64,000 nucleotides of DNA from Dicyema japonicum (Eukaryota > Animalia > Dicyemida), in assembly GCA_011109175.1 (NCBI GenBank), contig RDEW01000086.1, forward strand, positions 9,707 to 73,706. Direction: 5' to 3'. Made by a program: the position numbers and the translations under genes. Each line of letters begins with the position of its first letter. Position 1 is the first letter of the stretch. The notes under the pieces were generated by a model, which was given only the letters and a program-made list of their open reading frames with translations, searched no databases and had not been told where the DNA came from. Below are positions 1 through 37,543 of the stretch, piece after piece.

Positions 1-2033
1 ACCATTTTTTAACAATGAATTGGAACTAAAGCCACAGAAGGGGATTCGGAGAAAAATCTTAAAGAGTCCCACATCAACTAGTTTTTCGACTGAATTTCCC
101 GCCAACGATTTAAGTTTCACATCGAACAATATTTCACAACAATTTCTTGCCAATGATTCAAATTTAAAAAATGAAGTTGAGGTTGTTGACACCACAAATC
201 TTAGTTTGGAAGAAATTAAAGAAATTTTATTTACGACTGTAAATGTTTGCTGAATATTGTAGGATGGACACAAAAAACTGACTGATCAGCAGATTTTGCT
301 TCTTCTTAGAAATAAGCTTATACTTTCTTACAAATTGGAGAGTATTCTTGGCGACTACGAACGTGCTATTTCTATAAGGTTATTTCCTATTTATTTTTTT
401 GCTTAAAAACTTTTAGCAATTTATCATTAATTTATATAAATTTTTTGGTATGTCTATTTTAAATATTGTATCACTGTGGCTCATGAAATATAGTCTTGGT
501 TAGTTAGTTCCTCACTAACATGTAGGAGGCCGTTGTCACCAAGTGTCCATCTGAAAGTGCTCGGCGCTCCTGCTAGTCCTGTATAATTTTGGTTATGTTG
601 ACATAGCTCTTATATTCCTGCTAATGCTGAATATTATTTTTTATTAAAAGTATTTATTATTTTTCTAATATTTTTATTTTCATTATAATTAAAAAAAATA
701 TTATTTGGGATACTTTCCTACATGCGACAAAATAATTTCATTTTATGACGAATTAAAATAATCATAATTTAGGCGCCAATTTATGTTGGATGATTTGTCT
801 ACAGAATCTTAACCAAACCTTCCATACATAAACTACGGTCACTACAACATTGTACTTGTGTAAATTAGTCTTAGGTGGATGGAGCCTGCTGTGAGAACGT
901 TATAGGCTATATGCCTGTACCACTAGGAGTGTGTGGTCCCCTGTTACTGGATGGGGTCAAATATATGGTCCCCTTAGCAACAACTGAAGGCTGTCTGGTT
1001 GCTAGTGTGAATAGAGGAATGAGAGCCCTCACTTTTGGAGTCACATCAGTCCTCTCAATGACGAAATGACACGTGCTCCTGTTGTCAAATTTGACTCTGT
1101 TTCGAAGACCAATGAGTTCAAGCTGTGGTTGGAAGATAACTTTCAAGCTGTGGCCGATATTTTTAGCCAAAATAGTCGCTTCTGTCGACTGAAACGTATT
1201 TTCACCCGCCAAGCTGGTCGATTGTTGTACATTCGATTCTCAGCATCCACCGGTGACGCAATGGGAATGAATATGATCTCTAAATGTGCTGAAGTTGCTC
1301 TGAAGATCATAAAGGAGGAATTTTTTCCAACAATGAGAGTGATTAGTTTAAGCGGGAATTTTTGTTCGGATAAAAAGTCCGCTTCAATTAACTGGTAGAA
1401 TTATTAGACATTAATATTAGGATTGAAGGACGGGGGAAGTCCGTAGTTTGTGAGGCGGTGGTACCCGCTTCTGTTGTTTCAACTGTGCTGAAGACTACTG
1501 TGGAGAGTCTGGTGGAGCTTAATGAAGTAAAGAATCTGATTGGCTCATCCTTGGCCGGTGCTGTAGGTGGATATAATGCACATGCGGCCAATATTGTGAC
1601 GGCTTTGTACATTGCCACTGGTCAGGACCCTGCTCAGAATATTTCGTCATCAAACTGCCTGACTCTGCTTGAGTTTGGGGGAAAATCTGGACAGGATTTA
1701 CTGATCAGTTGTACTATGCCTTCCATTGAGTGTGGAACTGTGGGAGGTGGGACTATTTTACCTCCACAAAAATCTGCGCTAAATGTAAGGCCGTTTTTAT
1801 TTTCATTAGATGATGGGAGTTGCTGGAGCACGTCCTGGCGAATATGGCTCAAATGCCAGACAGTATGCGAGGATTGTATGTGCTACCGTTTTAGCGGGGG
1901 AACTATCACTTTTATCTGCCCTTTCGTCTGGTCATTTAGTCCAAGGTCATATGCGATATAATAGGTGATTTTTTGTGGCGATTTTTATAGGTCACAAGCT
2001 AACATTAACCTGTCTTGTCTTAACTTAAACTAA
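1..2033 (+). CDS. HMGCR: Class I HMG-CoA reductase, 5'-partial (linker plus catalytic domain), 6 introns
   Basis: Spliced translation gives [112 protein letters not shown] and GHMRYNRS. GT-AG introns at 239-262, 379-772, 852-874, 1395-1420, 1785-1809 and 1965-1990. Stop TAA at 2031-2033. One in-frame TAA (810-812) and one 1-nt frameshift (about 1045-1050) are probably sequence errors. Confidence 0.97.
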
Positions 2034-8661: not shown

Positions 8662-11600
8662 ATGCAAAGTATATTAATGAAATACTTTTTAATATCCTTA
8701 ATGGATAGTTCGGCTGATAAATTCGACGATAATATCTTTGATTTAGTAAAAAACCAAAAATGGAATGAATTAGAAAATATTTTATTCCGAGAAGCTCAGT
8801 TCGACATAATCGAATTAAATGCTCAGGAAAAAGTTGATTTCATAAATAATTTTAAGCAAACTGGTTTAACTCTCTTAATGCTGGCAATCAAAGAAAATAA
8901 ATTTTCTATTGCTGAAAGGCTTATCCAACAAAACATAGACCTGAATATTCAATGCAATGTAAGCAAACCATTTAATTCATATTTATTAAAAAACTAAAAA
9001 TAGAAAGGAAAAACTGCTTTGCACTACGCTGTATTGGCTGAGACTGACGAATTCACTAAATCTTTATTATTCAGAAAAATCAGTGTATCCATTCAAGATG
9101 AAGTATTTTTTTTAATTTTTCAGGACGGGAGACTTCCTTTACATTTGGCATGCAAGAATAATAACCCCGCTAACAATTCCTCAAAATATCTGCTCAAATC
9201 ACCTACAAAGGATTTTATCGTTCAAGATAAGGTTCTTTATATAATTATTTTACGGAACGGATATATTCCGTTATTTTACGCCATCCAAAAGTCCAAAATT
9301 CAAACTTGTCGAGAATTGCTGACGCTTAACAAAAAACAGATAAAAATCCAGTCTATGGTAAAAGGGAGCATAATTTTAGACTAATGGAGACACGGCAATG
9401 CATATTGCTGCCCGTTTGGGAACTGCTGAGCTAGTTACTTTATTTCACAGTCATGGAGGAGATGTGAATTCCCTTAATGTATATTTGATGAAGATAATCG
9501 TTATTTTAGTACAACGGCGAAAATCCATTACATATTGCTGCACAAAATAAAAATTTAAATTTGGTAAAATGTTTGTTTCACTTAAATGCTTCGGCCGAAG
9601 TCTTCGATAAGGTAATTTAGTTCTCAGATTTAGATGGGGAAATCACCTCTCCACATATCTACCGAAATGGGAGACATAGAAATAGTGAAATATCTAATAA
9701 ATAAATTCAAAGCAAATATTTTTGCGAGAATTAATGACGGAAGCACTCTTTTGCACATTTCAGTAAAATTCGGGCACCATAGCCTATCGGAATTTTTATT
9801 AAAACTGGGGATGCCTCTTTACATGTCTAATAAGGTTTTCGGACTTAAATTAACTTTTTGGTTGGGGAAGTTTGCCTTCACGAAGCTGCGAGACATGGAC
9901 GCGTAAATTTAATAAAAATGCTGATGAAAAAAATTGAAAATGTTAATTTTGCAGCAAAAGTCACTTCATGTAAATATTTAAAGGACAATTATACAGCGTT
10001 GCATTTAGCCGTTGAGAATAACAAAACAGAGGCTGTTCAACTTTTACTCGGATTGGGAGCTTGTACTGAGATTTTCGCTGGAAAGGTTTATCTTAAATTG
10101 AAAGTTCAGCTGAGAGAATCCGCTTTGCATATTAATGCAAGAGTATCTAATGGAGAAAAATGTACTGAACTTTTGATAAATTCTGGCGCCAACGTTAATG
10201 CTGTAAATGAAGTTCAATATGACCTTATTTATTAAAGAATGGAGAAACAGCACTTCACATCTCAATTAGAAGTAACAATTTGAGTGTTTTCCGAATATTG
10301 ATGAAAGAGAACGTGGATTGCGCTGCTCAAAGCAAAGTACCATCCACGTTCATTTTGGCAGAATGGAGATTCACCTCTACACATTGCTATAAGAAAGTCT
10401 CGTTTGGATATTTTAAAGGAACTAATTTCAAAATTAAAAAAAACTCATAAACGTTCAAGTTTTTTGCCAATCATAAATCTTCAAAACTTTGTATTCAGCA
10501 ACTTTGAATTTTAGGAAGGCGAGACTGTACTGCATTTAGCATGCGAACAAGGCATATCAAGGAAAATTTGATCAAACGGATATAATTTTGCTCCTTTTAG
10601 AAAATGGCGCAAATTGCGCAATTGAAACAAAATTAGTTATTTTCATTCAATTTTTAGACTTTGGAATCTCCCTTACATTACTGTGCTAGAAGTGGGAACA
10701 AAAATATTCTGTTAGAAATACTCCACTATTTAGATTTAAATTCCATTCAGTCTATTATTAATAAACCAGCAAAAGTAGAAAATTTAAAAAAAAACTAGAA
10801 TGGCTGGACTCCTCTTTATTATGCCTGTGAAATCGGCCGTCGAGAAGTTGTGAAAATTTTACTAAAATACTTCTCACGAGTCGATGCTATTGACACAGTA
10901 TTTGATTAGCTTTATAGCCAGTTGGGGCAGTCATCGATTCATCTAGCAAGCGCAAAGGGGCATAGAAAAATTATACAAGAATTACTCACAAAAAATTCAT
11001 TTTTGATTTCCGCTCCAAAAACGGTTTTACCCCTCTTCACTTTGCTGCCAAGAATGGGCATCATCACATCATTGAATGGCTAGTAAACAAATGCAAAGCG
11101 TCTCTGGAAATAAATTCTCTCGTAATTAATATTTACAACTTACAGAATAAGCAAACATCCTTGCATTTGGCTGCGAATTCGGGGCAAATGGTTACTTGCA
11201 AAATGCTGGTGAAGCTAGGATCCAATATTAATGCTAAAGACGCAGTAATAAGGTTTATTTTTGCTAGAATGGCTCGACCCCTTTACACTTGGCTGCCGAA
11301 AATGACCATGACAACATTGTAAAATTTTTCATAGAATTAAAATCTGATTTAATTTTCAACTTAGATAATGTACTGGAAAGTTTAATTTAACATAGAATAA
11401 CAACACGTGTGCACATATCGCAGCATTCCACGGAAGCTACAAAACAATCAGCGATTTGCTTATTTTGAACAAGAAAGCTGTTATATCAGCCTTAAACAAG
11501 GTAAATGTAGCTTTATCTTAGACAAACGACTGGACCCCACTTCATTGCGCTGCTAGCAAAGGTCATAAAAATGTCGTTAGTGCGCTAATTGATTCTGGAG

Positions 11601-14245
11601 CTGAACCAGAAATCGAAGATGCTGTATTTTATGGGAATTTAATTCTATCAGAAAGGAATGACGGCATTGCATTTGGCAGCTAAAAGAGGGCATTCAAATT
11701 TAATCGATGTTTTCAAAAACAACGTGGATTTGAATATTATTAGCAAAAAGGTAAATAAAACGTTTTATTAAAGAATGGGTTAACTCCATTGCACGTGGCC
11801 TCTCTTTATGGAAATAGTCAATTCACTAGTGAGATGTTAATTCACGTTTCTCCGACAACTCCAAGCGAGTTTTCTAAATTTGGATGCACCGTCAAAGACA
11901 TTGGAAAAGATTTTGGTCTTCATCCTTTACATTTCGCTGCCTTCTCTGGGAATGAAAGTGTTGTGAGAGTTCTTTTGAACAGCAACAAAGTTGAAATGAC
12001 TAAGTTTACACATATTCATGTAAATTAATAAAATAATACGAAAGAATTACATTCCAATCCATTACGCCATCCAAAATGGAAATAATAGCGTAGTGAGTCT
12101 TTTACTGAACGAATCAATATCACAGCTCAATTGTGTTGATCAAAGAAAACGAAGTTGCCTTCATCTTGCAGCCTTGAAAGGGAATTACGACACAGTGGTT
12201 TTTCTATTAGGCCAAGGTGCCGACGTCAACTCCATTTCTGAGGTACTAAATTTAGTGAACTTCTAAATATTGTTTGTCATGAACATTTTAGTCAGGGATG
12301 ACTGCCCTTCATTACGCAGCGAAATATGGTCATATTGGTATTGTAAATTTGCTGATAAAAAACGGAGCTATGATTTGCTTGAAAACAAATGATGGGAAGT
12401 CAGCAATCTCCTTAGCAGCCGCAGGTGGATTTGTCGAAGTTTTAATATCTCTTTTAAGCGGCTCTGATATTGATGAACTCTGTGATAACAAACAAGTTAG
12501 CAAGTCGTTCGTTATTTCAGTTTCTAGTTGATTTAATGCTTTGTAATAAAAGTTCATCAAAATGTCCAATCAGACGTCTTATTTTCTTGCATTCCGTTCC
12601 TATTGAAATGGCCTTAAAATTGGCTAAAAAATACCATATTCTTGCTGAAAGAGAAAAGGAAATAACAAACGATCTTTTAGCGACTGAGGCTGAATGTGAA
12701 AATCTTGCTACAGATTTATTTTCGATAATATCAGGAATGGACATGGATGACAATTTGTTGAAATCTTCAAATGTTAAAGGAATGACATTTCTCGACATTT
12801 TAATCGAAACTGAACAGAAAAATGTTTCTCTCAAAAATCTACTTTAGGTTATAGCGCATCCAGCATTACAAAAATACTTTTCAGAATTGTGGCTCCAAAA
12901 TATTAAGTGGGGAAAGTCAAGTTTATTCTCTTTATTTTTCTCTTGATAATGTTCCCCCCAATATGGCTTTTATCTACTCTTCCATTCTTCGCCAAATTTA
13001 ACAGAATTCCAGTTATAAAATTTATAAATTATTTCGCTACTCATATTTACTGCATGTTGCTTTACTTTATTGTCTCTGTTTCTCCAATTTATCCAATATA
13101 TGACTCAAACAAGTTACTGAATGCTAATGCTTAGTTTCCTGTCGTGTTTTTTTGAATTTTTACTTTTATTTTGGATCTTTGGTTGGATTATATTTGAATT
13201 TTCCAACAAAAAAGGAAAGAACGGGATTTGATTACATAAAAATTTGTGTTTTGCTTCTTTCAACAATCGCATTTTTTATCCACATGTAACTTACAACTTT
13301 CAGGTAATCAACTTTATTTTATAACTTTAGGAAAGCGAGAAATATTACTACATTTATATCAGAAATCAGATTCTATCTGGCTCGCTATTTTCTGTTTCAT
13401 GTTACTGCTGGATTTTTTAAGCTTTCATTATATGTTTGGTCCTTGGGTAGTTATAATTCAAAGTTTGTTATCCGAGGTTGTTCGCTTCATGTCTATTATG
13501 CTAATATTTATGCTGCATTTACTATTTCTATAGCGGCTATTAGCTCTCCCATGAACAACAAAACGTTAACAACTGTCAATCAAACTTCAACTCCAATGAA
13601 AATTGTTGATATTTTTGAATTTCTTTATTTTGGATTATTTGGGCTCGTCAACCCAATGAGTTTATCCCCGTATGCTCAGACGCCTTCGTGGAGTTTCTTT
13701 CTAATGAAGACTATTCTCGGAATATACATGTCTGTTTCAATAATCGTGTTAGTGAACTTGCTTATTGCAATGATGTCAAACACTTATCAGCGTATACAAG
13801 CTCAATCTGACATAGAATGGAAATTTACAAGAACTAAATTGATCACAAATATGTACAACATACCAGCAAGTCCGTATCCATTAAACATATTCGTTATTCT
13901 GTTTAGAAATATTAAAACCGTTTGCAACAAGGCAGGTATCGGAACTTAAATAAATCAAAGCCCAAAGCCTCGGCTGCTGTTGGAAAGATTCTGAAGAGTC
14001 TTTCATCATTAAAAGTAAATTTAAAGAAGCAAAAATAAAAGAAAAATGGATTGAAGTTATGAGGAGGAGTACTTATCAAATGAAAGAGAGAAGCATCGAT
14101 ATTACACGTTTTCACAATTTAATATATTTTAGACTTGTATGGGCACAACAAAGTAAACGGAGAATCCATCAAAATGAAAGATGCTATAAATTGGAACCAA
14201 GTCATAGATAAATATAACTTACTCAAGTCAGAAAATAATAAATAA
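8662..14245 (+). CDS. nompC: NOMPC/TRPN mechanosensitive channel: 29 ankyrin repeats, 6-TM TRP domain, about 30 micro-introns
   Basis: Manual splicing yields 29 ankyrin repeats (e.g. GKTALHYA, GWTPLYYA, LHFAAFSGNESVVRVLLNS). These are followed by ILIETEQKNVIAHPALQKY, LLDFLSFHYMFGPW, GIYMSVSIIVLVNLLIAMMSNTYQRIQAQSDIEWKF (S6 and TRP box) and KDAINWNQVIDKY, colinear with my recollection of Drosophila NOMPC. Start is 8662 or 8701; stop 14243-14245. Seven 1-nt frameshifts are needed (about 10560, 11002, 12910, 13210, 13285, 13390, 13508). Confidence 0.96.
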
Positions 14246-23650: not shown

Positions 23651-24943
23651 AGCGGACTCGTTTAAATATCCCGTAAACTAACTCCTAATTCCTGTTTGAA
23701 TAAAGTGTTTTCGGTTCATTTTATTTAGGTAGTGATAAAGTGATTAGAATTTTTACAATAGAGAGAAGATTGGATTTTTGGCGGATAAAAAACAACCATC
23801 GCGTCCATTTGTAATATGGAGACAATCACTCTATCGAAAATTAAAAGAATTTCGTTTCTTTAAGTCTTGATAGTACTTCGAGGGAATTCCTTCTAGGTCG
23901 AGAGTCACCAATGTGGTCTCTTAACTTTTTGTAATTCTTTGCTTAAAATTTCGTAGATAATTTTGTCGAAATTTCTAAACTTCCTAACAAAAACACGTGC
24001 ATAAATTAAGTAATTTAATAAAATTTAAAAAGTTTAATTTAACCTTAAAACTAAATTTTTAAATCACAATGCATGTTCTACGTAAAATTGGTTTCAGAAA
24101 ACTTATATAACCTGAGGGCCAATGATTGGCAGAAAGAGGGACGTTTTGGTTCCGTCCTTTCAGAAGCTTTAGCAACAATTTCCTTCTTACAATGTTTCCA
24201 AGTACCCTAGAAGAACCAACTTAAATTCCACCAGTTTACGGTACTTCCTGGTTCAATCCGATGATCTCGAAGATATCTTTTCGAAATGTTCATTGTAGAG
24301 ACCATTTTGCCGGTCGGTCTGGTGAAACTTTCAGAAGATGTAGAAGTGTTTTTTGTTACTTGATACAAAGTCAAATACTACAACAAAGACTGTGGCAGAC
24401 TGTGGCAATTATGGCACTAATTGCCAACTGTTTCTTGGCAGCTGGTTTCAGATTTGTTTCTTCTCACACATATAGAAAAAGTTTGATTTTTATGAATTTA
24501 TAAATCCTACTTACAAATGACTATAGCGAGAAATTAACTTTTGCATATATCGTTAATATAGTAATATTGCTCATTGAGCGTATCTCCATGCAAATCATCA
24601 AGGGAAATGCGTTTTGAATTATGAGAGCAGCCAGCAGTTGTTAACTATAAGTTTCTCTATTAAACCGATTAATTAAAAAAATATAGTAAGCAGACAAAAA
24701 AATCTCTGATAGTTAATAAAGTTGGTATTTTTAATTATTGTTATTTTGTCTTCTAATTAAAGTGTGTTCGTTTTTGATGGAAATAAAATTTTTGTAGAAA
24801 ATATATTTATTAGGGCTTCAGTAAAAGGAATTTAATTCAGTGAAGGTAAATTTTCATTGTCATTTTTTGATTGAAGATCCGTGTTGTTTGATTATTTTTA
24901 TCTTTTATTTGATTTCTTTTTTTATTTAATGTTTGTTTTAAAT

Positions 24944-27900
24944 TCATAATAGTTTAAAAAGAATGAATAAACCTTGAAAACTAACAAAGATTATAAAAAT
25001 ATATTCTATCACCGTGGTGAATCTAACAAAAAATAATAAAATCCATGGAAGTCCTAAAATATATTTTAACTTTACCTGAAAAAATAAAAAGTGAAAATAA
25101 AATTTTGTTTTTAATCAAATTCATACTATTAGGTGTAGTAGTTTTTATAAATCCAGACATTAAAATAATGTATAATATTAAATTTAAAAGCAGACAGATT
25201 ATAATCGGACCAAGCAACCCCAAATAAAAGCCAAGTCCAGTAATCAAGCATTTCCCTTCGGAATAATATACATTTTTATTTATTATTAAAATCAAACCGA
25301 CGATGGAGAGTGGAATACCTAATTACAAATAAAACTAATATTAAACCCCAACTAAAAACAAATAATTTGACCTTCAAATATTTTATGTTGACTCCAATTA
25401 CTTTGTTAAATTTTAAATAATGGACATATGATATTGTGAACATCCATAAAAATTGAGACAAAATTCCATAGTGGAGTAAAACTCCAACTGTTACACACTC
25501 TAATAACTCTTTTCTGAAGAATAAATGATTCCAAAAATAAACACCATGTTCAACATCAAAATTGATGTTTTCAAATTAAGTAGAAGAATTTGAAAAATAG
25601 AATTCTTCAAAAGTCTAAAGTAAATAAATTTTACCAACTTAATTTTTAGTATAAATAAAATAAATGAAATTATTATAGCGACTGTGGAGAGAGAAATTCC
25701 AATTATTGTAATCACTGTAGTTGCATCATCTCTATTTTCAGAGTTAGTTATTGGACTCTAACGTGAAAATGATAATTACAAATAGAATAGCAAAACTCGT
25801 CAAATGCAGAGATTTACATCTATAAAACAGTCCAGAAATTTCTATTTCACCCATTTTCCCAAAGACAAGTTTTGCTGTTGTAAAATACACAATTTGGAAA
25901 TAACCCCTGTAATTAATTATGTTTTGATACATTATTTATATTTTCTATATAAAATGGAAGTATTGGAAATTTTAATATTAAAGATAAATTTTCAGATTCA
26001 GCGACGACCGAAACTTGTAAAGATTGTGGACTTAGTCCAATTGAAGGAGTTAATACGTTTTCATTGTGAAAAACCACGCGAACTCGATTAATATTTAAAG
26101 TTACTATTAGTAGAAACGTTAGTAGGAAATTCAATTTCAACAGAGACATTATTATTTGAAGAAATGTTTAAATTTCCCACTACTTTTTTATCGATGACTT
26201 CATATTTTAAACTACTATCTGGAGGAATAGCATTCACTAAATCAAAAATAGCTTTTCTTGCTTTAGACGCGGTATCATTTGATAGCTTATTAGTTGATTC
26301 AAGTAATACAAAAAATGTTGCAACAACTTCAGTATTCTAGTATTTTCATTTAAAATCAAAAACCTCATCGCTGTGATCCCTATTAATCAATTTATCTTAG
26401 AATCAAAAAATGACTAACTTGCTAATTTTTCTATTTTATAAGCAGGTTCGATAATTTTATCAAAAATTTGAATGTTTGATACACTTTCTCCATTTATCAA
26501 GTTATTTAAAAATTCGTTAACAAAATCATGTTTCGACTCAAATAAAACATCTGTAATATTTTCATTTGGTCTTTTGTTTCGTACAAGCTAAATTATTATT
26601 TCAAAATTTATAAACATATTATTTTCATTTATACAATTAGTATCATAAACAGAATTAGCTACATAAATACTTTCTGAATCATTTCTATTTTTAAAATAAT
26701 TTTCTATAATATTTTGTAATTTCTTTTTTAATTCTTCTTTTATAGTATCGTCTACAAAAATCTTAAATTGAGTATCATTAAAATTGAAGGCCATTATTTG
26801 GCAAATAGATATCTCTAAACTCAAAAAAGGTTTAGATCTTACATTATTAGGAAAATTTCTCTATTAGCATCATTAATCTAAAAGTTATGAAAATTTTACT
26901 TTTGTTTCAAATAAGTAATTTAAATTTCGCAAATAATATTCTTCCTCACTATATAAAATAGTTAATTTAAGACCTACGAATTAGTTATATCCATACAATG
27001 ATTCAATTCTCTTCTACCTGTACACCAGTCTAACGTTTCATCAATATTTGTATAATTATTTGAAATAGATGCTAATTTTTTAAATTTATAGTCGAATTCA
27101 ATAATTTTATCGAAAATTTGAAAGTTTGATACACTTTCTCCATTTATCAAGTTATTTAAAAATTCGTTAACAAAATCATGTTTCGACTCAAATAAAACAT
27201 CTGTAATATTTTCATTTGGTCTTTTGTTTCGTACAAGCTCAATTATCATTTCAAAATTTATAAACATATTATTTTCATTTATACAATTAGTATCATAAGC
27301 AGAATTAGCTACATAAATTATTATTGAAGAATTTCTATTTTTAAAATAATTTTCTAAAAGAGTTTGTAATTTCTTTCTTAATTCTTCTTTTATGGTATCG
27401 TTTACAAAAATCTTTAATTGAGCATTATTAAAATTGAAGGCCATTATTTGGCAAATAGATATCTCTAAACTCAAAAAAGGTTTTGATCTAATATTATTAA
27501 AGAAAATTTCTCTATTAGCATCATTAATCTAAAAATTATGAAAATTTTACTTTTGTTTCAAATAAGTAATTTAAATTTCGCAAATAATATTCTTCCTCAC
27601 TATATAAAATAGTTAATTTAAGACCTACGAATTAGTTATTTTTATACAATAATTCAATTTTCTTCTACCTGTACACCAGTTTAACGTTTCATCAATATTT
27701 GTATAATTATTTGAAATAGATGCTAATTTTTTAAATTTATACTCGAATTTAGTAATTTTAACGAATATTTGAAAGTTTGATACACTTTCTCCATTTATCA
27801 AGTTATTTAAAAATTCGTTAACAAAATCATGTTTCGACTCAAATAAAACATCTGTAATATTTTCATTTGGTCTTTTGTTTCGTACTAGCTCAATTATCAT

Positions 27901-29739
27901 TTCAAAATTTATAAACATATTATTTTCATTTATACAATTAGAATCATAAGCAGAATTAGCTACATAAATTATTTTTGAAGAATTTCTATTTTTTAAAAAA
28001 TTTTCTAAAAGAGTTTGTAATTTCTGTCTTAATTCTTCTTTTATGGTATCGTTTACAAAAATCTTAAATTGATTATCATTAAAATTATAGGTCATTATTT
28101 GGCAAATAGATGTATCTAAACTCAGAAATGATTTTGATCTTACATTATTAAGAAAATTTCTCTATTGGCATCATTAATCTAAATGTTATGAAAATTTTAC
28201 TTTTGTGTTATATAAGTAATTCAAATTTCGCAAATAATATTCTTCCTCACTATATAAAATAGTTAATTTAAGACCTATGAGTAACTTATATCCATACAAT
28301 AATTCAATTCTCTTGTACCTAGACACCAGTTTAACGTTTCATCAATGTTTGTATAATTATTTGAAATAGATGCTAATTTTTTAAATTTATACTCGAATTC
28401 AGTAATTTTATCAAATATTTGTAAGTTTGATACACTTCTTTTATCAATCAAATTATTAAAATATTCGTTAACGAAATCATCTATCGAGTTATATAAAATA
28501 TCTGTAATATTTTCATTTGGTCTTTCTTTCCTTAATTGATCAATTATATCTTCAAAATTTATAAACGTATTATTTTCATTTATACAATTAGAATCATAAA
28601 CAGAATTAGCAACATAAATAATTACTGAATCATTTCTATTTTTAAAATAATTTTCTATAATATTTTGTAATTTCTTTCTTAATTCTTCTTTTATGGTATC
28701 GTATACAAAAATCTTAAATTGAGTATCATTAAAATTGAAGGCCATTATTTGGCAAATAGATATCTCTAAACTCAAAAAAGGTTTAGATCTTACATTATCA
28801 TAGAAAATTTCTCTATTAGCATCATTAATCTAAAAGTTATGAAAATTTTACTTTAGTGCTATATAAGTAATTTAAATTTCGCAAATAATATTCATCTTCA
28901 CTATATAAAATAGTTAATTTAAGACCTACGAATTAGTTATATACATATAATAATTCAAATCTCTTCTAATTGTACACCAGTTTAACAATTTATCAATATT
29001 TGTGTAATTATTTGAAATAGATGCTATTTTTTTAAATTTATATTCGAATTTAGTAATTTTAACGTATATTTGCAAGTTTGATACACTTCCCTCATTAATC
29101 AAGTTATTTAAAAATTCGTTCACAAAATCATGTTTCGACTTAAATAAAACATCTGTAATATTTTCATTTGGTCTTTCGCCATATAAATGATCAATTATAT
29201 CTTTAAAATTTATAAACATATTATTTTCCTTTATACAATTAGGATCATAAGCAGAATTAGCAACATAAATTATTCTTATGCAGTTATCATCAAGTATAGG
29301 TTGTGGATTTGTGCCAATAGTAAAACAATTGTTAATTATGAGATACAATTTATTTTCTAATTTTTTATGTAGCAAAGCTATCATCAAATCTTCCAGACCA
29401 TTTGCTCTATATGAGAAGTTCATTATTTCACAAATACTTATTATTAAGTCAAAAAAATCTATGGAATCGATAGCATTGAATAACATTGTTTTATTACGAT
29501 TCTAAAAATTATGTAAACTTTACTGCATCGTTACATAACTCATCTAAATCTTCCAAAAATTTAGATGTTCTACTTAATGTGCCGATTAACTCTCTTAAAC
29601 CTATGAATAATTCATAATATATACAAGAATCTATTTCATCTTGAGCAAAGCACATGTTATACATGTCATTGATGATATAGGTAGGTTTACCAATTGAGAT
29701 TATTGAAATAGGTAACAACCAACATAAAAACATTAGCAT
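24944..29739 (-). CDS. Adhesion GPCR: signal peptide, about five tandem ~200-aa repeats, GAIN/GPS, secretin-family-like 7TM
   Basis: Signal peptide MLMFLCWLLPISIISIG. GAIN-like SPQSLQVSVVAESENLSLILKF. GPS NCVFY...W...HL|TSFAILF. TM1 TVITIIGISLSTVAIIISFILF; TM3 LLHYGILSQFLWMFTISYVHY; TM4 FVFSWGIPLSIVGLIL; ECL2 Cys (EGKCLI); TM5 GLLGPIIICLLLNLILY; TM6 FSGLPWIL; TM7 YIFIIFVSFQGLFILF. Many 22-29 nt introns. The exact C-terminus is uncertain; several 1-nt shifts and a TAG at 26588-26590. Confidence 0.9.
26400..29490 (-). repeat. Tandem array of about five 650-651-bp exon/intron units inside the adhesion GPCR
   Basis: Homologous positions at 26974, 27625, 28275 and 28926 (periods 651, 650, 651), plus a partial unit at about 26400-26920. 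Each full unit carries the same 29-nt and 22-nt introns (e.g. 27600-27628 and 27529-27550). Confidence 0.95.
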
Positions 29740-30454
29740 TATAAATTTAATTTTGGCCTTATATATAAATGTGAATTATATCGTGGAAATATGCTAATTT
29801 TACTTTCGAGCAAATTTTAGAACTTTCATTTAAACTTATATTTTCAATTCTAGCGACTTTAATTTGACGATCATCAAATAAAAAAATAAGATTGAAATCT
29901 ACGTTAAAAAAATCGAACAGTCCAATAAAATTCTGGCCTTGAGATTCCTTCTGTTGTTTAAAAGGCTCTGATTTGAGGCAATTTCAAATAAATAGATTGC
30001 TTAGGTTTAAATATAGAGAACCGTAAATTGTGACAGTTGATGAATATCATATAGGTCCAAAACCAAGATTATTTGGTTCAATGGATAAGATTTCTATATC
30101 AACTTGACTATTGAAAAGCCTAATTTGGCTACTTAACTGAAGATTAAATTTCAATTTTTATTATTCAAAAAATTAGATCACGACCTAAATAAAATTAACT
30201 AAAAGTTTATAAAATGATTAAATTTGATAACTTTAATATCTTTGTAAGAAGCGATTATAAACATCGACTAAAGCAAAACTCACTTACTACGGGAAAATCA
30301 GATGTGATCATAATAAGGCTATACAGCACTATATGAGTATATTCCGACAATTGGTTTCGTCACTGTGACTATCCTTCCATCTAGTAGACCTCAATATGAG
30401 TCATCTCTTTTTTGTTCTCATCCTCCTTCAATTTCTTCCCCACATAGAGTGACC

Positions 30455-32885
30455 CTTCAAGACACGGACGTGGGAAAAAAAACTTCCTTGACCATACTTG
30501 ACCATTTCTGCACGGCAAACAAACTGTTCTTGTGAAACACCGCATTCTCTCATCGTGCATGCCACATAACCACTTGTATGGGCGAACGAAGAAACCCAGA
30601 AGGAAAACTAGTCCCTATTTACAACCAAATTGAATATATTATATTTCGGATCAATGACAAACGCTCTCTTATAAACGCATGCTCATACGAAGGTTTAACA
30701 ACTGTCAGCGATCACAGAATGGTTATTTTCACCTTCAGCCTGGCGAAACATGGTATCAAACATAAGAAACATTACAAACAATAATAATGAGAATACAAGA
30801 AATGGATACGCAACGGGAAAACTGATCTCTCATCTAAACACAGTCAAAAATTAACAAAAACACCTCTGCTCTCATCTGAAGGACCAAACAGTAGGAATTT
30901 CGTGGGATCACACAAAGTATATAATAAACGATGCAGCAAGCCAGTACCTCGGCACGCGGGAGATGGCCAGTAAGGGTCGGACGACACATACAGAACTAGT
31001 AATGGAGTTAGCAAAGGAGTTAAAAGAAATCCATACAAAAAAAACTAATCGAAAAAGACAATAACAAGAGAAAAGTCTTTCAGGGGCAGAAAGACCAAAT
31101 CCGTAGAAAAATCAGGAGTCTGAACAAGACACTCCACCAAGAAGAATTTCTTCGCAAAATCAATGAAGTATCCAAACTAAACGATAATTCACATATGTAT
31201 ATGGCCGCTCGTTTACTACGCCACACAAACCGGAAGGAAAGAATAATCATCAAAGAAAAAAATGGCATGACATTACTGAATACTAATGAGTAAGCGGAAA
31301 TAATTGCAACACATTTTGAAAAGCTTTTTAATGTGACTACAGCAATCTCCCCCATTCAAAGAAAAGCCTAAACCCTTAAAAGAACCAATTTCAATTTTGG
31401 AAGTAAAAACAGCATGTCAAAAACTAAAAAATAACAGAAGCCCTGGACCAGATACGATAAACCCTGAATTACTGAACTACGGGCCTGACCCCCTTTTTGA
31501 AAAAATCGCTACACTACTAAATGAAATGTTTTCAACTAACTCAACCTTGCCCCTGGGAACGGGATTACTAATACCTATACAAAAACCCAATAAACCCAAA
31601 GGACCGGTTGAAAACTTACGACCTATTATATTATCAAATTCTCTACGGAAAGTCTTAGCTAACATTGTATTGGAACGAATAAAAGGACCCGCCTATGAAT
31701 ACCTACCCGAAAGTCAAAGTGGGTTCAGAGAAGGAAGATTAACAGCTGATGCAGTCTGGAGTCACAGATAAAGATGTGCAACACATCAAAGATATTGCAA
31801 TGCCATCCAAATTCTGGGAATACATCTATCAAAAGCCTTTGGCTCGGTTAACAGGAAAAAATTGATGACAGTGCTGGAAGGGTTTATTTACGAATCGAGT
31901 CCAAGAATGATTCAAATCCTTCTATCTAACACACAACTCCTTGTGAGAGTTGGAAAAACCTACTCAAGAAAATTTGAAACAAACACAGGCACTCCTCAAG
32001 GAGATTCCCTCTCTCCCCTACTATTCACAATATACTTGGAGGCCGCTATGAGGGAACTGAGACCATCATATCAAGGAAAAATAGAAGAAGTGATTTATGC
32101 AGAAGATTTCGACCTAATTTCTGTAGACAAAGAACTCCTGGAGCATGTACTAGAAAAAGCACCAGATATACTTGGGAAATGGTTTCTCACCGTGAACAGG
32201 GAAAACACAGAACGGACAGAAATAAGACGAATGAACAACTCACTCGAAGAAAAATGGAGACACATAAAGATACTTGGCTCACTACTAGGAGATAGCGAAG
32301 ACATCATACGGAGAAAAACATTGGCAAATGCGGCATTACTTGGCTAAACGGAAAGGATATAACATAAAACAAAGGATTATGTTATACGACACTTTCATCA
32401 AACCAATTCTACTATACAACTCTGGGACCTGGGCCACCTCTAAAAAGGAATTGGAGTGGCTAGACTCATTTCACAGGAATCATTTAAGAAACATAACTGG
32501 AATGTCCTGGCCATCCAAGATCTCGCGGAATGGACTGTACAATAAGTGTGACTGTATACCATTAAGCCACGATTAGCTCTCGTTGGAGACTTTTTGGACA
32601 CGTCCTGAGGTTGGACCCGATATCCCTTCCGAATATAGCAATGGAAGATTACTACTCCTCCAATGTAAAACGCTTTCGTGGAAGACCGAGAACTACCCTC
32701 CCGGTTGTTCTACAAAACGATCTGAAAGCCGTGAAGAAAACATTGGCATCTGGTGACGATCTGGACTTACTGAGTGACCTAGCAAAGAACAGAAGAGCTT
32801 GAACCAACCTAACTAATTCTCTTATATTTTTTGCTGCACATGCGGGGCTATAAAAATTATGGCTCTCGTGAAAGTGCTAATAATA
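30455..32885 (+). mobile_element. RTE-like LINE, 5'-truncated, with 11-bp TSD
   Basis: End of APE domain (SDHRMV); RT motifs KNNRSPGPD, NLRPIILSN, SQSGFREGR, GTPQGDSLSPLLF, IYAED; C-terminal FRGRPRTTLP; (TAA)n tail. TSD atagagtgacc at 30444-30454 and 32886-32896. Confidence 0.93.
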
Positions 32886-35669: not shown

Positions 35670-37543
35670 AGTGACTAGCTTTTATTTTTTATACTTTTTT
35701 AAATATACAATTGAATTTTGAATAATTATTTTTTAATTTTGGTTAAAAAACATACATTATAAATGCTATATAGTGCTATTTTTAATTTTTAAATGCTAAT
35801 TTAAATTGCAGTTAATAATGTGTTTACGGAATTCCGAAATTCGCGGGAGCACTCCTTTGGCTGAATAACAACAGAGCAGCTGGCTATGACAATATTTGTG
35901 GGGAGTTTGTTAAAATACGCACCAACCCAGCTAGCAGAAAAGATAACTTTCATATTCAACGAGATATTCAGGACTCATTGTTCAATTGACATCGCGATGG
36001 GAGTTCTACTTCCTTTACAAAAACCTGGCAAACCTGCAGGTCCAATTGAAAATTTTCAAGCCGATCGTGCTTTTGACCACTTTGCGAAAATATTGTCGAT
36101 TACAACATTGAATCGAATATCAAATTCAGATGACCAATACTTGTCACCAAGTCAAAGCGGATTCAGACCAGGAAAATCAACTGCTGATATAGTATTGGAG
36201 TCATCGTTAGCTTACGACAATATGTAAGAAGTACATTAAAAACAATATATACTCTGGGAGTCGACTAATCAAAAGCATTCGACTGTGTCTGCCGAGATAA
36301 ACTATTGCAAGCTCTCAAGGACATAATTGATGAGGACTGTTTGATGATTGTGCGTTTTTTGCTGGCTGACACGAGCCTGATAGTGAAAGTGGGGAAGGGC
36401 TATTCGGAAATATTAACGACCGGCATTGGTATTTCGCAAGGGGACTCGCTTTCGCCAGTTCTCCTTGCAATCTATTTGGAAGCTGCGTTGAGGAACGTTA
36501 GGAAAGAATTAGGTCACTTAAATAATCATTTTGTTGAATTAATGTATGCAGATGACATCGATTTTGTGTCTGAGGTTGTGGTGGTAATAAGAACTGTAAT
36601 AGATAAAGCCACAACAGTTCTGGAGAGGTGGTCTTTGAAGATCAATTCAGAAAACGGAGTTAACTTCGATTCAGCGGTTACCGACACGGATTGATAAGAA
36701 ATGGAAGTTTACTAAAAGGCTCGGCTCGTTTTTGGGTGATGCTGAGGACATTGCTCGCAGAAAGATGTTGGCATCGTGTGCACTGAAAAGATGTGAGTAT
36801 TTGGACTCGCAGAAAACTTATCGCCTTACATCTTCGGATGTGCTTATATAGCGCGTTCATACAACCAGTCCTATTATATAACTCGGGAACATGGGGAACA
36901 TCAAAAACGGACCGTGACTGACTAGACACATTTCATAGAAATCAATTGAGAAAAATTGCGGGAATTAAATGGCCACAGATTATCAAAAAAGACACTCTCT
37001 ACAAATTATGTAAATGCAGACCGATAAGCAGATAAGTAATTACCTCACGCTGGCGACTTATCGGACATGTTCTGAGAATGGACGAAGTGATTCCTTGCAA
37101 TCAAATGATGGAAGAATACTATTATACAAAGGACTACATTTTGATAATGACAAGGCAAATATCAAAAATTATATAAATAAAAGAATGGAGGAAAATGGAT
37201 TTAAACTTATTATTGAAATGACCGAACCAAAAATTAGCCAACAAGATTATTTTTCTCTTTCACGCTGTCAGGTATCCTATGCATCTGTTGAAAGAGCTAT
37301 TAAAATGCTAAAAAATATATTTAAAAAAGATAGGAACTTCCATCCAGACAATATCAGGCATTAACTTTTATTATATTACAATAAATAAAATTTAAATGTT
37401 ATTTTTATTTTAAGTTATAGATTTGACAATTTAAATGCTAGATTTTATCATTTTAAGTGCTAACTTTTTTAATTATAATTGCTAGATTTTGTGATTTTTT
37501 AGCGCTAAAAAAATTTTTTTAAGTGCTAGAAACAACTTGCCCT
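35670..37543 (+). mobile_element. Second, inverted copy of the hAT element; most of its interior is occupied by an RTE insertion
   Basis: 35680-35820 is the reverse complement of about 34730-34890; 37120-37543 is the reverse complement of 33146-33560 and includes the TIR caacttgcccta. Confidence 0.8.
35860..37100 (+). mobile_element. Degenerate RTE-like RT nested in hAT copy 2
   Basis: LQKPGKPAGP, SQSGFRPGKST, GISQGDSLSPVLL, LMYADDIDF, VLLYNSGTW. Confidence 0.85.

Follow-up and report, generated by a model that had tools for sequence, protein, structure and literature searches.

An adhesion-GPCR-like locus of Dicyema japonicum with an ectodomain of five orphan repeat units and an interrupted coding sequence

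Results

A tandem array of five spliced units

We describe a gene on the minus strand of a 64,000-nt stretch of Dicyema japonicum contig RDEW01000086.1 (the window, within which all coordinates are given). Judged from its sequence, this gene has the architecture of an adhesion G-protein-coupled receptor (GPCR; family B2), with an ectodomain built of tandem copies of an orphan domain and with a coding sequence that five lesions interrupt in the assembled copy. It begins with an ATG at 29739 (-), and its exons were curated by hand (Table 1). An alternative model obtained by greedy chaining of GT..AG introns was discarded and replaced by the curated one, as its open reading frame (ORF) was continuous only through invented introns of 18-45 nt that delete conserved sequence. 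The curated model contains 14 introns of canonical length, all of 22-29 nt and 13 of them starting with GT, together with two further introns that need 39 nt. Its conceptual product of ~1,456 residues has an N-terminal hydrophobic leader and seven hydrophobic segments, and is rich in Asn (12.7%) and Ile (12.4%). Ultra-short introns and a GC content of ~36% are as in the dicyemid genome; the receptor gene itself is an AT-rich island, with 23-27% GC over 24000-30000 and 31-40% in the rest of the window.

The ectodomain consists of five head-to-tail units between 26420 and 29321, with start-to-start distances of 650/651/650/651 nt. Tandem Repeats Finder missed this array, whose period exceeds its 500-nt limit, and a separate repeat search recovered all five copies. 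In the unit alignment each copy is made of a 22-nt intron, a 551-nt main exon, a 29-nt intron and a 49-nt mini-exon; the main exon measures 533 nt in unit 3 and 572 nt in unit 1, and is truncated in unit 5. The nearly invariant 22-nt intron of the units reads GTAAAATTTTCATAAYTTTTAG, and the 29-nt intron is identical in the three units that keep its GT donor, unit 2 differing at the donor base only. Both introns must be spliced out, since a stop follows immediately when either is read as coding. Units 2-5 share 88-95% of their nucleotides with one another and 71-78% with unit 1, whose first half is divergent and 27 nt longer. Every unit carries four conserved Cys, and 25 N-x-S/T sequons are spread across the ectodomain. 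The original prediction of about five tandem ~200-residue units with 29-nt and 22-nt introns, conserved Cys, sequons and a hydrophobic leader thus agrees with the alignment and the spacing, except that the fifth copy stops after ~147 codons.

Read evidence came from contigs of four runs of one sample, which behave as DNA: they contain no splice joints, and one loose end carries a Nextera junction adaptor. In these runs the unit-specific contigs lie at the single-copy depth of their run, and nothing in the depth suggests that the array is collapsed or inflated.

Could the array be non-coding, as a satellite, a transposon-derived repeat or an assembly artifact beside LINE (long interspersed nuclear element) fragments? 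Its low GC content (23%, against ~35% around it), the LINE reverse-transcriptase fragments 1.7 kb upstream and the fact that no read spans the array would all be in keeping with such an origin. Four units, however, each hold an open frame of 184 codons, which at 78% A+T has a chance probability of ~2e-9, and we conclude that the array is real and of coding origin. Micro-introns of the GT-AG type in matching positions, the conservation of Cys and sequons, the single-copy depth of the unit-specific contigs and the in-register junction of the array with the downstream receptor exons likewise make a non-coding origin extremely unlikely. The neighboring RVT_1 ORFs lie at 31397-32347 (+) and 35886-37364 (+); we read them as fragments of LINE-type retrotransposons, and they begin 1.7 kb upstream of the receptor gene.

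The repeat unit matches no known domain in sequence or fold searches

Sequence searches found no relative of the unit. A phmmer search of the 184-aa main exon against 1.84 billion protein representatives returned one spurious match (E 6.7e-4), to an unrelated repeat protein. Pfam searches covering every unit, with E up to 10, yielded no consistent match, and in particular no EGF, cadherin, Ig, LRR, TSP1, CUB, lectin or HRM domain, which bears out the prediction that the unit lies outside the first seven of these classes. A PDB profile search with the unit gave two chance-level matches only. Structure prediction was also run. With the five units as the sole alignment, AlphaFold produced mostly helical models of low confidence, with a pLDDT (predicted local distance difference test) of 47 for the exon and of 61, with a predicted TM-score (pTM) of 0.62, for a 139-residue core. 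Fold searches with this better, still low-confidence core model (pLDDT 61) matched no known fold (Foldseek best E 1.8 in the PDB and 3 in the AFDB clusters; Atlas TM <=0.43). By these searches the unit is an orphan domain, and one that expanded recently, as had been predicted.

One lead comes from a protein-language-model search, which weakly suggests a likeness to SEA domains: SEA clusters were the top named neighbors, with 24-28 of 100 matches and scores of 0.77-0.83, a range that a third of shuffled sequences also reach. The alternating hydrophobic pattern of several segments would, in our reading, fit a beta-alpha-beta-beta-alpha-beta core. SEA modules occur in the adhesion GPCRs ADGRF1, ADGRF5 and ADGRG6, and tandem SEA repeats in mucins such as MUC16; like the present units, they are tandem, glycosylated juxtamembrane stalk modules of roughly 120-200 aa. 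The units differ from them in that hmmscan finds no match to SEA (PF01390) in any unit at E up to 10, in having no G|SVVV-type site, and in their mostly helical low-confidence model.

Two further ideas on the origin of the unit were rejected. An arrangement in shifted phase, in which exon 1 would carry a unit tail and the array would comprise five complete domains, draws on the C-x8-C spacing only, and the similarity does not reach significance (p 0.05-0.4). Nor did the unit arise by divergence from the GAIN-like part of the receptor, to which it shows no similarity.

The C-terminal half is that of an adhesion GPCR

The GPCR proteolysis site (GPS) profile PF01825 is matched over its full length (1-45/45) with 26.1 bits against a cut-off of 22.5, a score obtained only with X standing in for the frame break at 25851. 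The residues HLT followed by SFAILF can be read directly in the sequence, immediately before the first transmembrane helix (TM1). Three exons of the seven-transmembrane (7TM) region match 7tm_2 (PF00002) collinearly, at profile positions 73-137 (E 4.7e-4, 19.9 bits), 126-195 (E 2.9e-5, 23.9 bits, cut-off 20.6) and 210-250 (E 0.013); the TM1-2 exon alone gave no match. The best PDB matches of the 7TM exons are almost all adhesion GPCRs (ADGRL2, E5, D1, G5, G6, G2 and G4), each of them weak (E 0.05-0.9), and a word-indexed search with the TM4-TM6 exon found nothing. Together these matches support the predicted adhesion-GPCR architecture. The prediction had also named a GAIN domain with an intact HL|T cleavage site and a TSFAILF tethered agonist; cleavage site, agonist and GPS motif are present, but the GPS is frame-broken, and the exons upstream of it, a short region of ~180 aa, have no Pfam match to GAIN.

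Compared with known adhesion GPCRs (ADGRL2, ADGRD1, ADGRG2/G4/G5/G6 and ADGRE5), the predicted protein is alike in its signal peptide and in a long ectodomain that its sequons mark as putatively glycosylated, in a GPS in which H-L|T is followed by a tethered agonist of TSFA(I/V)L type just ahead of TM1, and in 7tm_2-type helices with the Cys pair of TM3 and extracellular loop (ECL) 2, (G/S)WGxP in TM4 and FQGxFI in TM7. It differs in that its ectodomain is formed by an orphan domain, its GAIN-like part is only ~180 aa long and goes unrecognized by Pfam, its GPS, as read from the sequence, has one of the two usual Cys pairs, each 7TM exon taken singly matches weakly (E 1e-5 to 1e-2), and five lesions interrupt the assembled copy.

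The assembled copy carries five interrupting lesions

Six departures are listed here, relative either to the unit consensus or to related copies; five of them count as interrupting lesions. Two are substitutions found in no other unit. In unit 5 a TAG at 26590-26588 takes the place of the GAG or GAT of the other units, and the 29-nt intron of unit 2 has lost its donor (GT>AT at 28278) within a cluster of four substitutions. Neither mixing of units nor a typical PacBio consensus error explains these substitutions.

Three further lesions are frame breaks in the GPS-7TM part, and at each of them related contigs preserve an open frame. At the GPS break (25851/25850) these contigs carry +2 nt at 25851/25854. 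At 25503/25502, in ECL1 between TM2 and TM3, they carry +1 nt at 25502 and read SEKSFIECVTVGVLLHYG / SEKSFIECVTVG..., a normal TM2-ECL1-TM3 junction. After TM7, at ~24955-24960, the window reads FILFKLL followed by a stop, whereas related contigs read FILLLNIMNL / FQGLFILLLNIMNL and join the window's +2 frame, which is open for 38 codons (chance 0.03) up to a stop at 24839-24837. The stop at 24946-24944 had been taken as the gene end, at 24944, because of this last break; the ancestral frame runs further, into a short, Lys/Asn-rich tail.

The remaining departure is a 1-nt deletion common to units 3 and 5, a little beyond the 22-nt intron. Both units keep the frame only when an AG 17 nt further downstream serves as acceptor, which gives introns of 39 nt and six fewer residues. 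Because it is common to two units and cleanly fixed, this deletion is probably real and tolerated.

No uninterrupted coding sequence therefore leads from the ectodomain to the 7TM region. As assembled, with the TAG in unit 5, the lost donor in unit 2 and frame breaks in the GPS, in ECL1 and after TM7, this copy cannot make the ancestral protein.

Odd splicing might in principle rescue the copy, through introns of 31 nt in the GPS, 29 or 41 nt in ECL1, 44 nt in unit 2 and 45 nt over the TAG; alternatively, the product might be a secreted protein of two repeat domains that ends at the failed unit 2 intron. In-frame GT..AG intervals of such lengths do exist at each lesion, and dicyemid introns are equally short. 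The 31-nt interval, however, removes the strand before the cleavage site, so that PF01825 matches over its last 12 positions only and scores 16.9 instead of 26.1 bits, short of the cut-off; we rejected it as an intron, since the full GPS profile matches only when the stretch is read as coding. The intervals able to bridge the ECL1 break would delete half of TM2, which otherwise aligns with the TM2-ECL1-TM3 region of adhesion GPCRs. The acceptors involved do not have the T-rich ends of the 14 canonical-length introns, and related contigs have these stretches as coding sequence. We regard such a rescue, or a shortened product, as very unlikely.

Table 1. Parts of the receptor gene in the curated model, listed from the N-terminal to the C-terminal end
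Feature	Coordinates	Strand	Description	Evidence
Exon 1	29524..29739	-	ATG; hydrophobic leader (probable signal peptide); Cys-containing head with C-x8-C as in the unit tail	Hydropathy 1.7 over residues 1-19
Unit 1	28852..29523	-	22-nt intron 29523-29502; exon 29501-28930; 29-nt intron 28929-28901; mini-exon 28900-28852; divergent N-terminal half; 27-nt insertion	Repeat search, unit alignment
Unit 2	28201..28851	-	29-nt intron donor AT for GT at 28278; a TAG follows directly if the intron is left unspliced	Unit alignment
Unit 3	27551..28200	-	650 nt; 1-nt deletion between 28152 and 28151; frame needs downstream AG (39-nt intron 28200-28162)	Unit alignment, curated model
Unit 4	26900..27550	-	Sole lesion-free unit, used as reference; 184-aa main exon 27528-26977	Unit alignment
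Unit 5	26419..26899	-	Ends after ~147 codons; 1-nt deletion as in unit 3 (39-nt intron 26899-26861); in-frame TAG 26590-26588	Unit alignment, curated model
GAIN-like spacer	25931..26418	-	~150 aa; exons 26395-26364, 26336-26105, 26082-25931; introns of 23, 27 and 22 nt; no Pfam match	Curated model, Pfam
GPS motif exon	25780..25906	-	HL|T; tethered-agonist-like TSFAILF; frame break 25851/25850	Pfam profile, related contigs
7TM region	24944..25757	-	Exons 25757-25347 (frame break 25503/25502, ECL1), 25318-25076, 25053-24944; introns of 28 and 22 nt; SWGIP, FQGLFI and TM3-ECL2 Cys motifs	Pfam, PDB matches
Displaced C-terminal tail	24837..24953	-	38 codons open in +2 frame; ancestral stop 24839-24837; in frame with TM7 in related contigs	Chance of open frame 0.03; loose contig ends at 24960

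Related 7TM copies and weak constraint among the units

Over the 7TM exons (24967-25800) the summed contig depth is 5-25x the single-copy level, with up to 7-9 distinct contigs per position, while the repeat region stays near single copy. Summed contig depth is not a copy number, and all it shows is the presence of several related 7TM sequences in the sample; the pile-up suggests that the genome or population holds many close 7TM relatives at other places. Within the 64-kb window there is no paralogue of the unit or of the 7TM region. Only two rhodopsin-type and four secretin-type 7TM proteins have been reported for a Dicyema species (PMC6543705), and we found no paper that mentions adhesion GPCRs of dicyemids.

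Between units, the ratio of nonsynonymous to synonymous divergence (dN/dS) is 0.63-0.95, and all three codon positions differ about equally. Variable columns make up 5/51 of the intron positions against 182/593 of the exon positions (p=0.001); most of this contrast is due to unit 1, without which the counts are 3/51 and 85/599 (p=0.13). Constraint among the units is weak, and the pattern fits maintained splicing with a protein that evolves almost freely. These comparisons would be compatible with diversifying selection and with relaxed constraint alike.

Assembly reliability

The published D. japonicum assembly merged Illumina (Platanus) and PacBio RS II (Falcon) data from pooled animals with 1.24% heterozygosity (PMC6736024). 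As a control we examined the HMG-CoA reductase gene at 875-1965 (+) of the window, which is well conserved (Pfam E 2.5e-33 on one exon) and correctly spliced by micro-introns. Its frame is nevertheless broken once, at ~1055, by two additional bases in a CTCTC context where an intron would not fit; this break is either an assembly indel (insertion/deletion) error or the mark of a very recent pseudogene. At two positions of the receptor region, 28940 and 24883, the contigs of all four runs differ without exception from the window by a 1-nt indel, and their depth is single-copy; since substitutions occur in them as well, they represent either a divergent allele or an assembly error.

On the plus strand at 8662-13949, ankyrin-repeat ORFs are followed by an Ion_trans pore region, consistent with a TRPN-like channel gene. 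Its position ~11 kb from the receptor had been mentioned alongside the suggested role in host adhesion or mechanosensing; such proximity has no evidential weight.

Discussion

We propose, on balance and with limited confidence, that this locus is a member of a dicyemid-specific, multi-copy family of adhesion GPCRs (B2), and that the copy in the assembly is most likely a recently disabled paralogue or a null allele. Part of the indel damage may be assembly error.

Several observations weigh against this proposal. The frame break in HMG-CoA reductase makes indel errors in the assembly plausible, so some or all of the three breaks between the GPS and the end of the 7TM region could be consensus errors of a hybrid Illumina/PacBio assembly. 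The contigs that close these breaks differ from the window by 3-5%, which makes them paralogues or divergent alleles rather than the true sequence of the locus, and only ~41% of the window's 31-mers are present in the read contigs. The deletion in units 3 and 5 is compensated by an in-frame downstream AG, as it would be in a working gene.

The break in HMG-CoA reductase, the hybrid assembly of pooled animals and the restored frame of units 3 and 5 would suit a functional, full-length gene with genuine 39-nt introns, in which the frame breaks are PacBio-consensus indels and in which the TAG and the AT donor are either errors or variants of a single haplotype in the pooled heterozygous sample. 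The positions of introns, Cys and sequons, which are conserved among the units, are also in line with it. Against it stand the TAG and donor substitutions, absent from all other units, the latter lying in its four-substitution cluster; the density of damage, with three breaks in ~1 kb of the 7TM end against one in ~1.1 kb of the control gene; a dN/dS near 1; and, as weak evidence, the finding that no RNA run was found to hold the sequence. We consider a functional gene less likely than a disabled copy.

On the proposal of a disabled family member, the ancestral product would have run from a signal peptide through five tandem, N-glycosylated, Cys-containing orphan domains of ~200 aa to a short GAIN-like module with a GPS (HL|T), followed by the tethered-agonist strand TSFAILF, the 7TM bundle and the short tail. 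By analogy with adhesion GPCRs, an intact member would cleave itself at HL|T, and the repeat stalk would then remain non-covalently attached as the N-terminal fragment. A pull or a ligand acting on the stalk might expose TSFAILF, which would engage the 7TM bundle and trigger a signal. The suggestion that the stalk serves in host adhesion or mechanosensing is speculation and finds no support in our data.

A more far-reaching scenario, which we consider unlikely on present evidence, is that dicyemids, which have lost nearly all other GPCRs, expanded an adhesion-GPCR family in which a near-identical 7TM module is combined with fast-evolving, lineage-restricted repeat ectodomains of a new fold. 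Unit duplication, gene conversion, diversifying selection and a reservoir of pseudogenes might then supply variable surface receptors with which the parasite senses, or clings to, the renal epithelium of cephalopods.

For now, the chief lesson of the locus is that plausible micro-introns can conceal lesions in first-pass gene models of this genome. If intact, expressed paralogues exist, the family would be the principal set of GPCRs in an animal that has ~30 cells and lacks a nervous system. The ectodomain would then represent a new protein domain that arose and was amplified in one parasite lineage, and would offer a tractable case of how adhesion receptors gain new extracellular modules.

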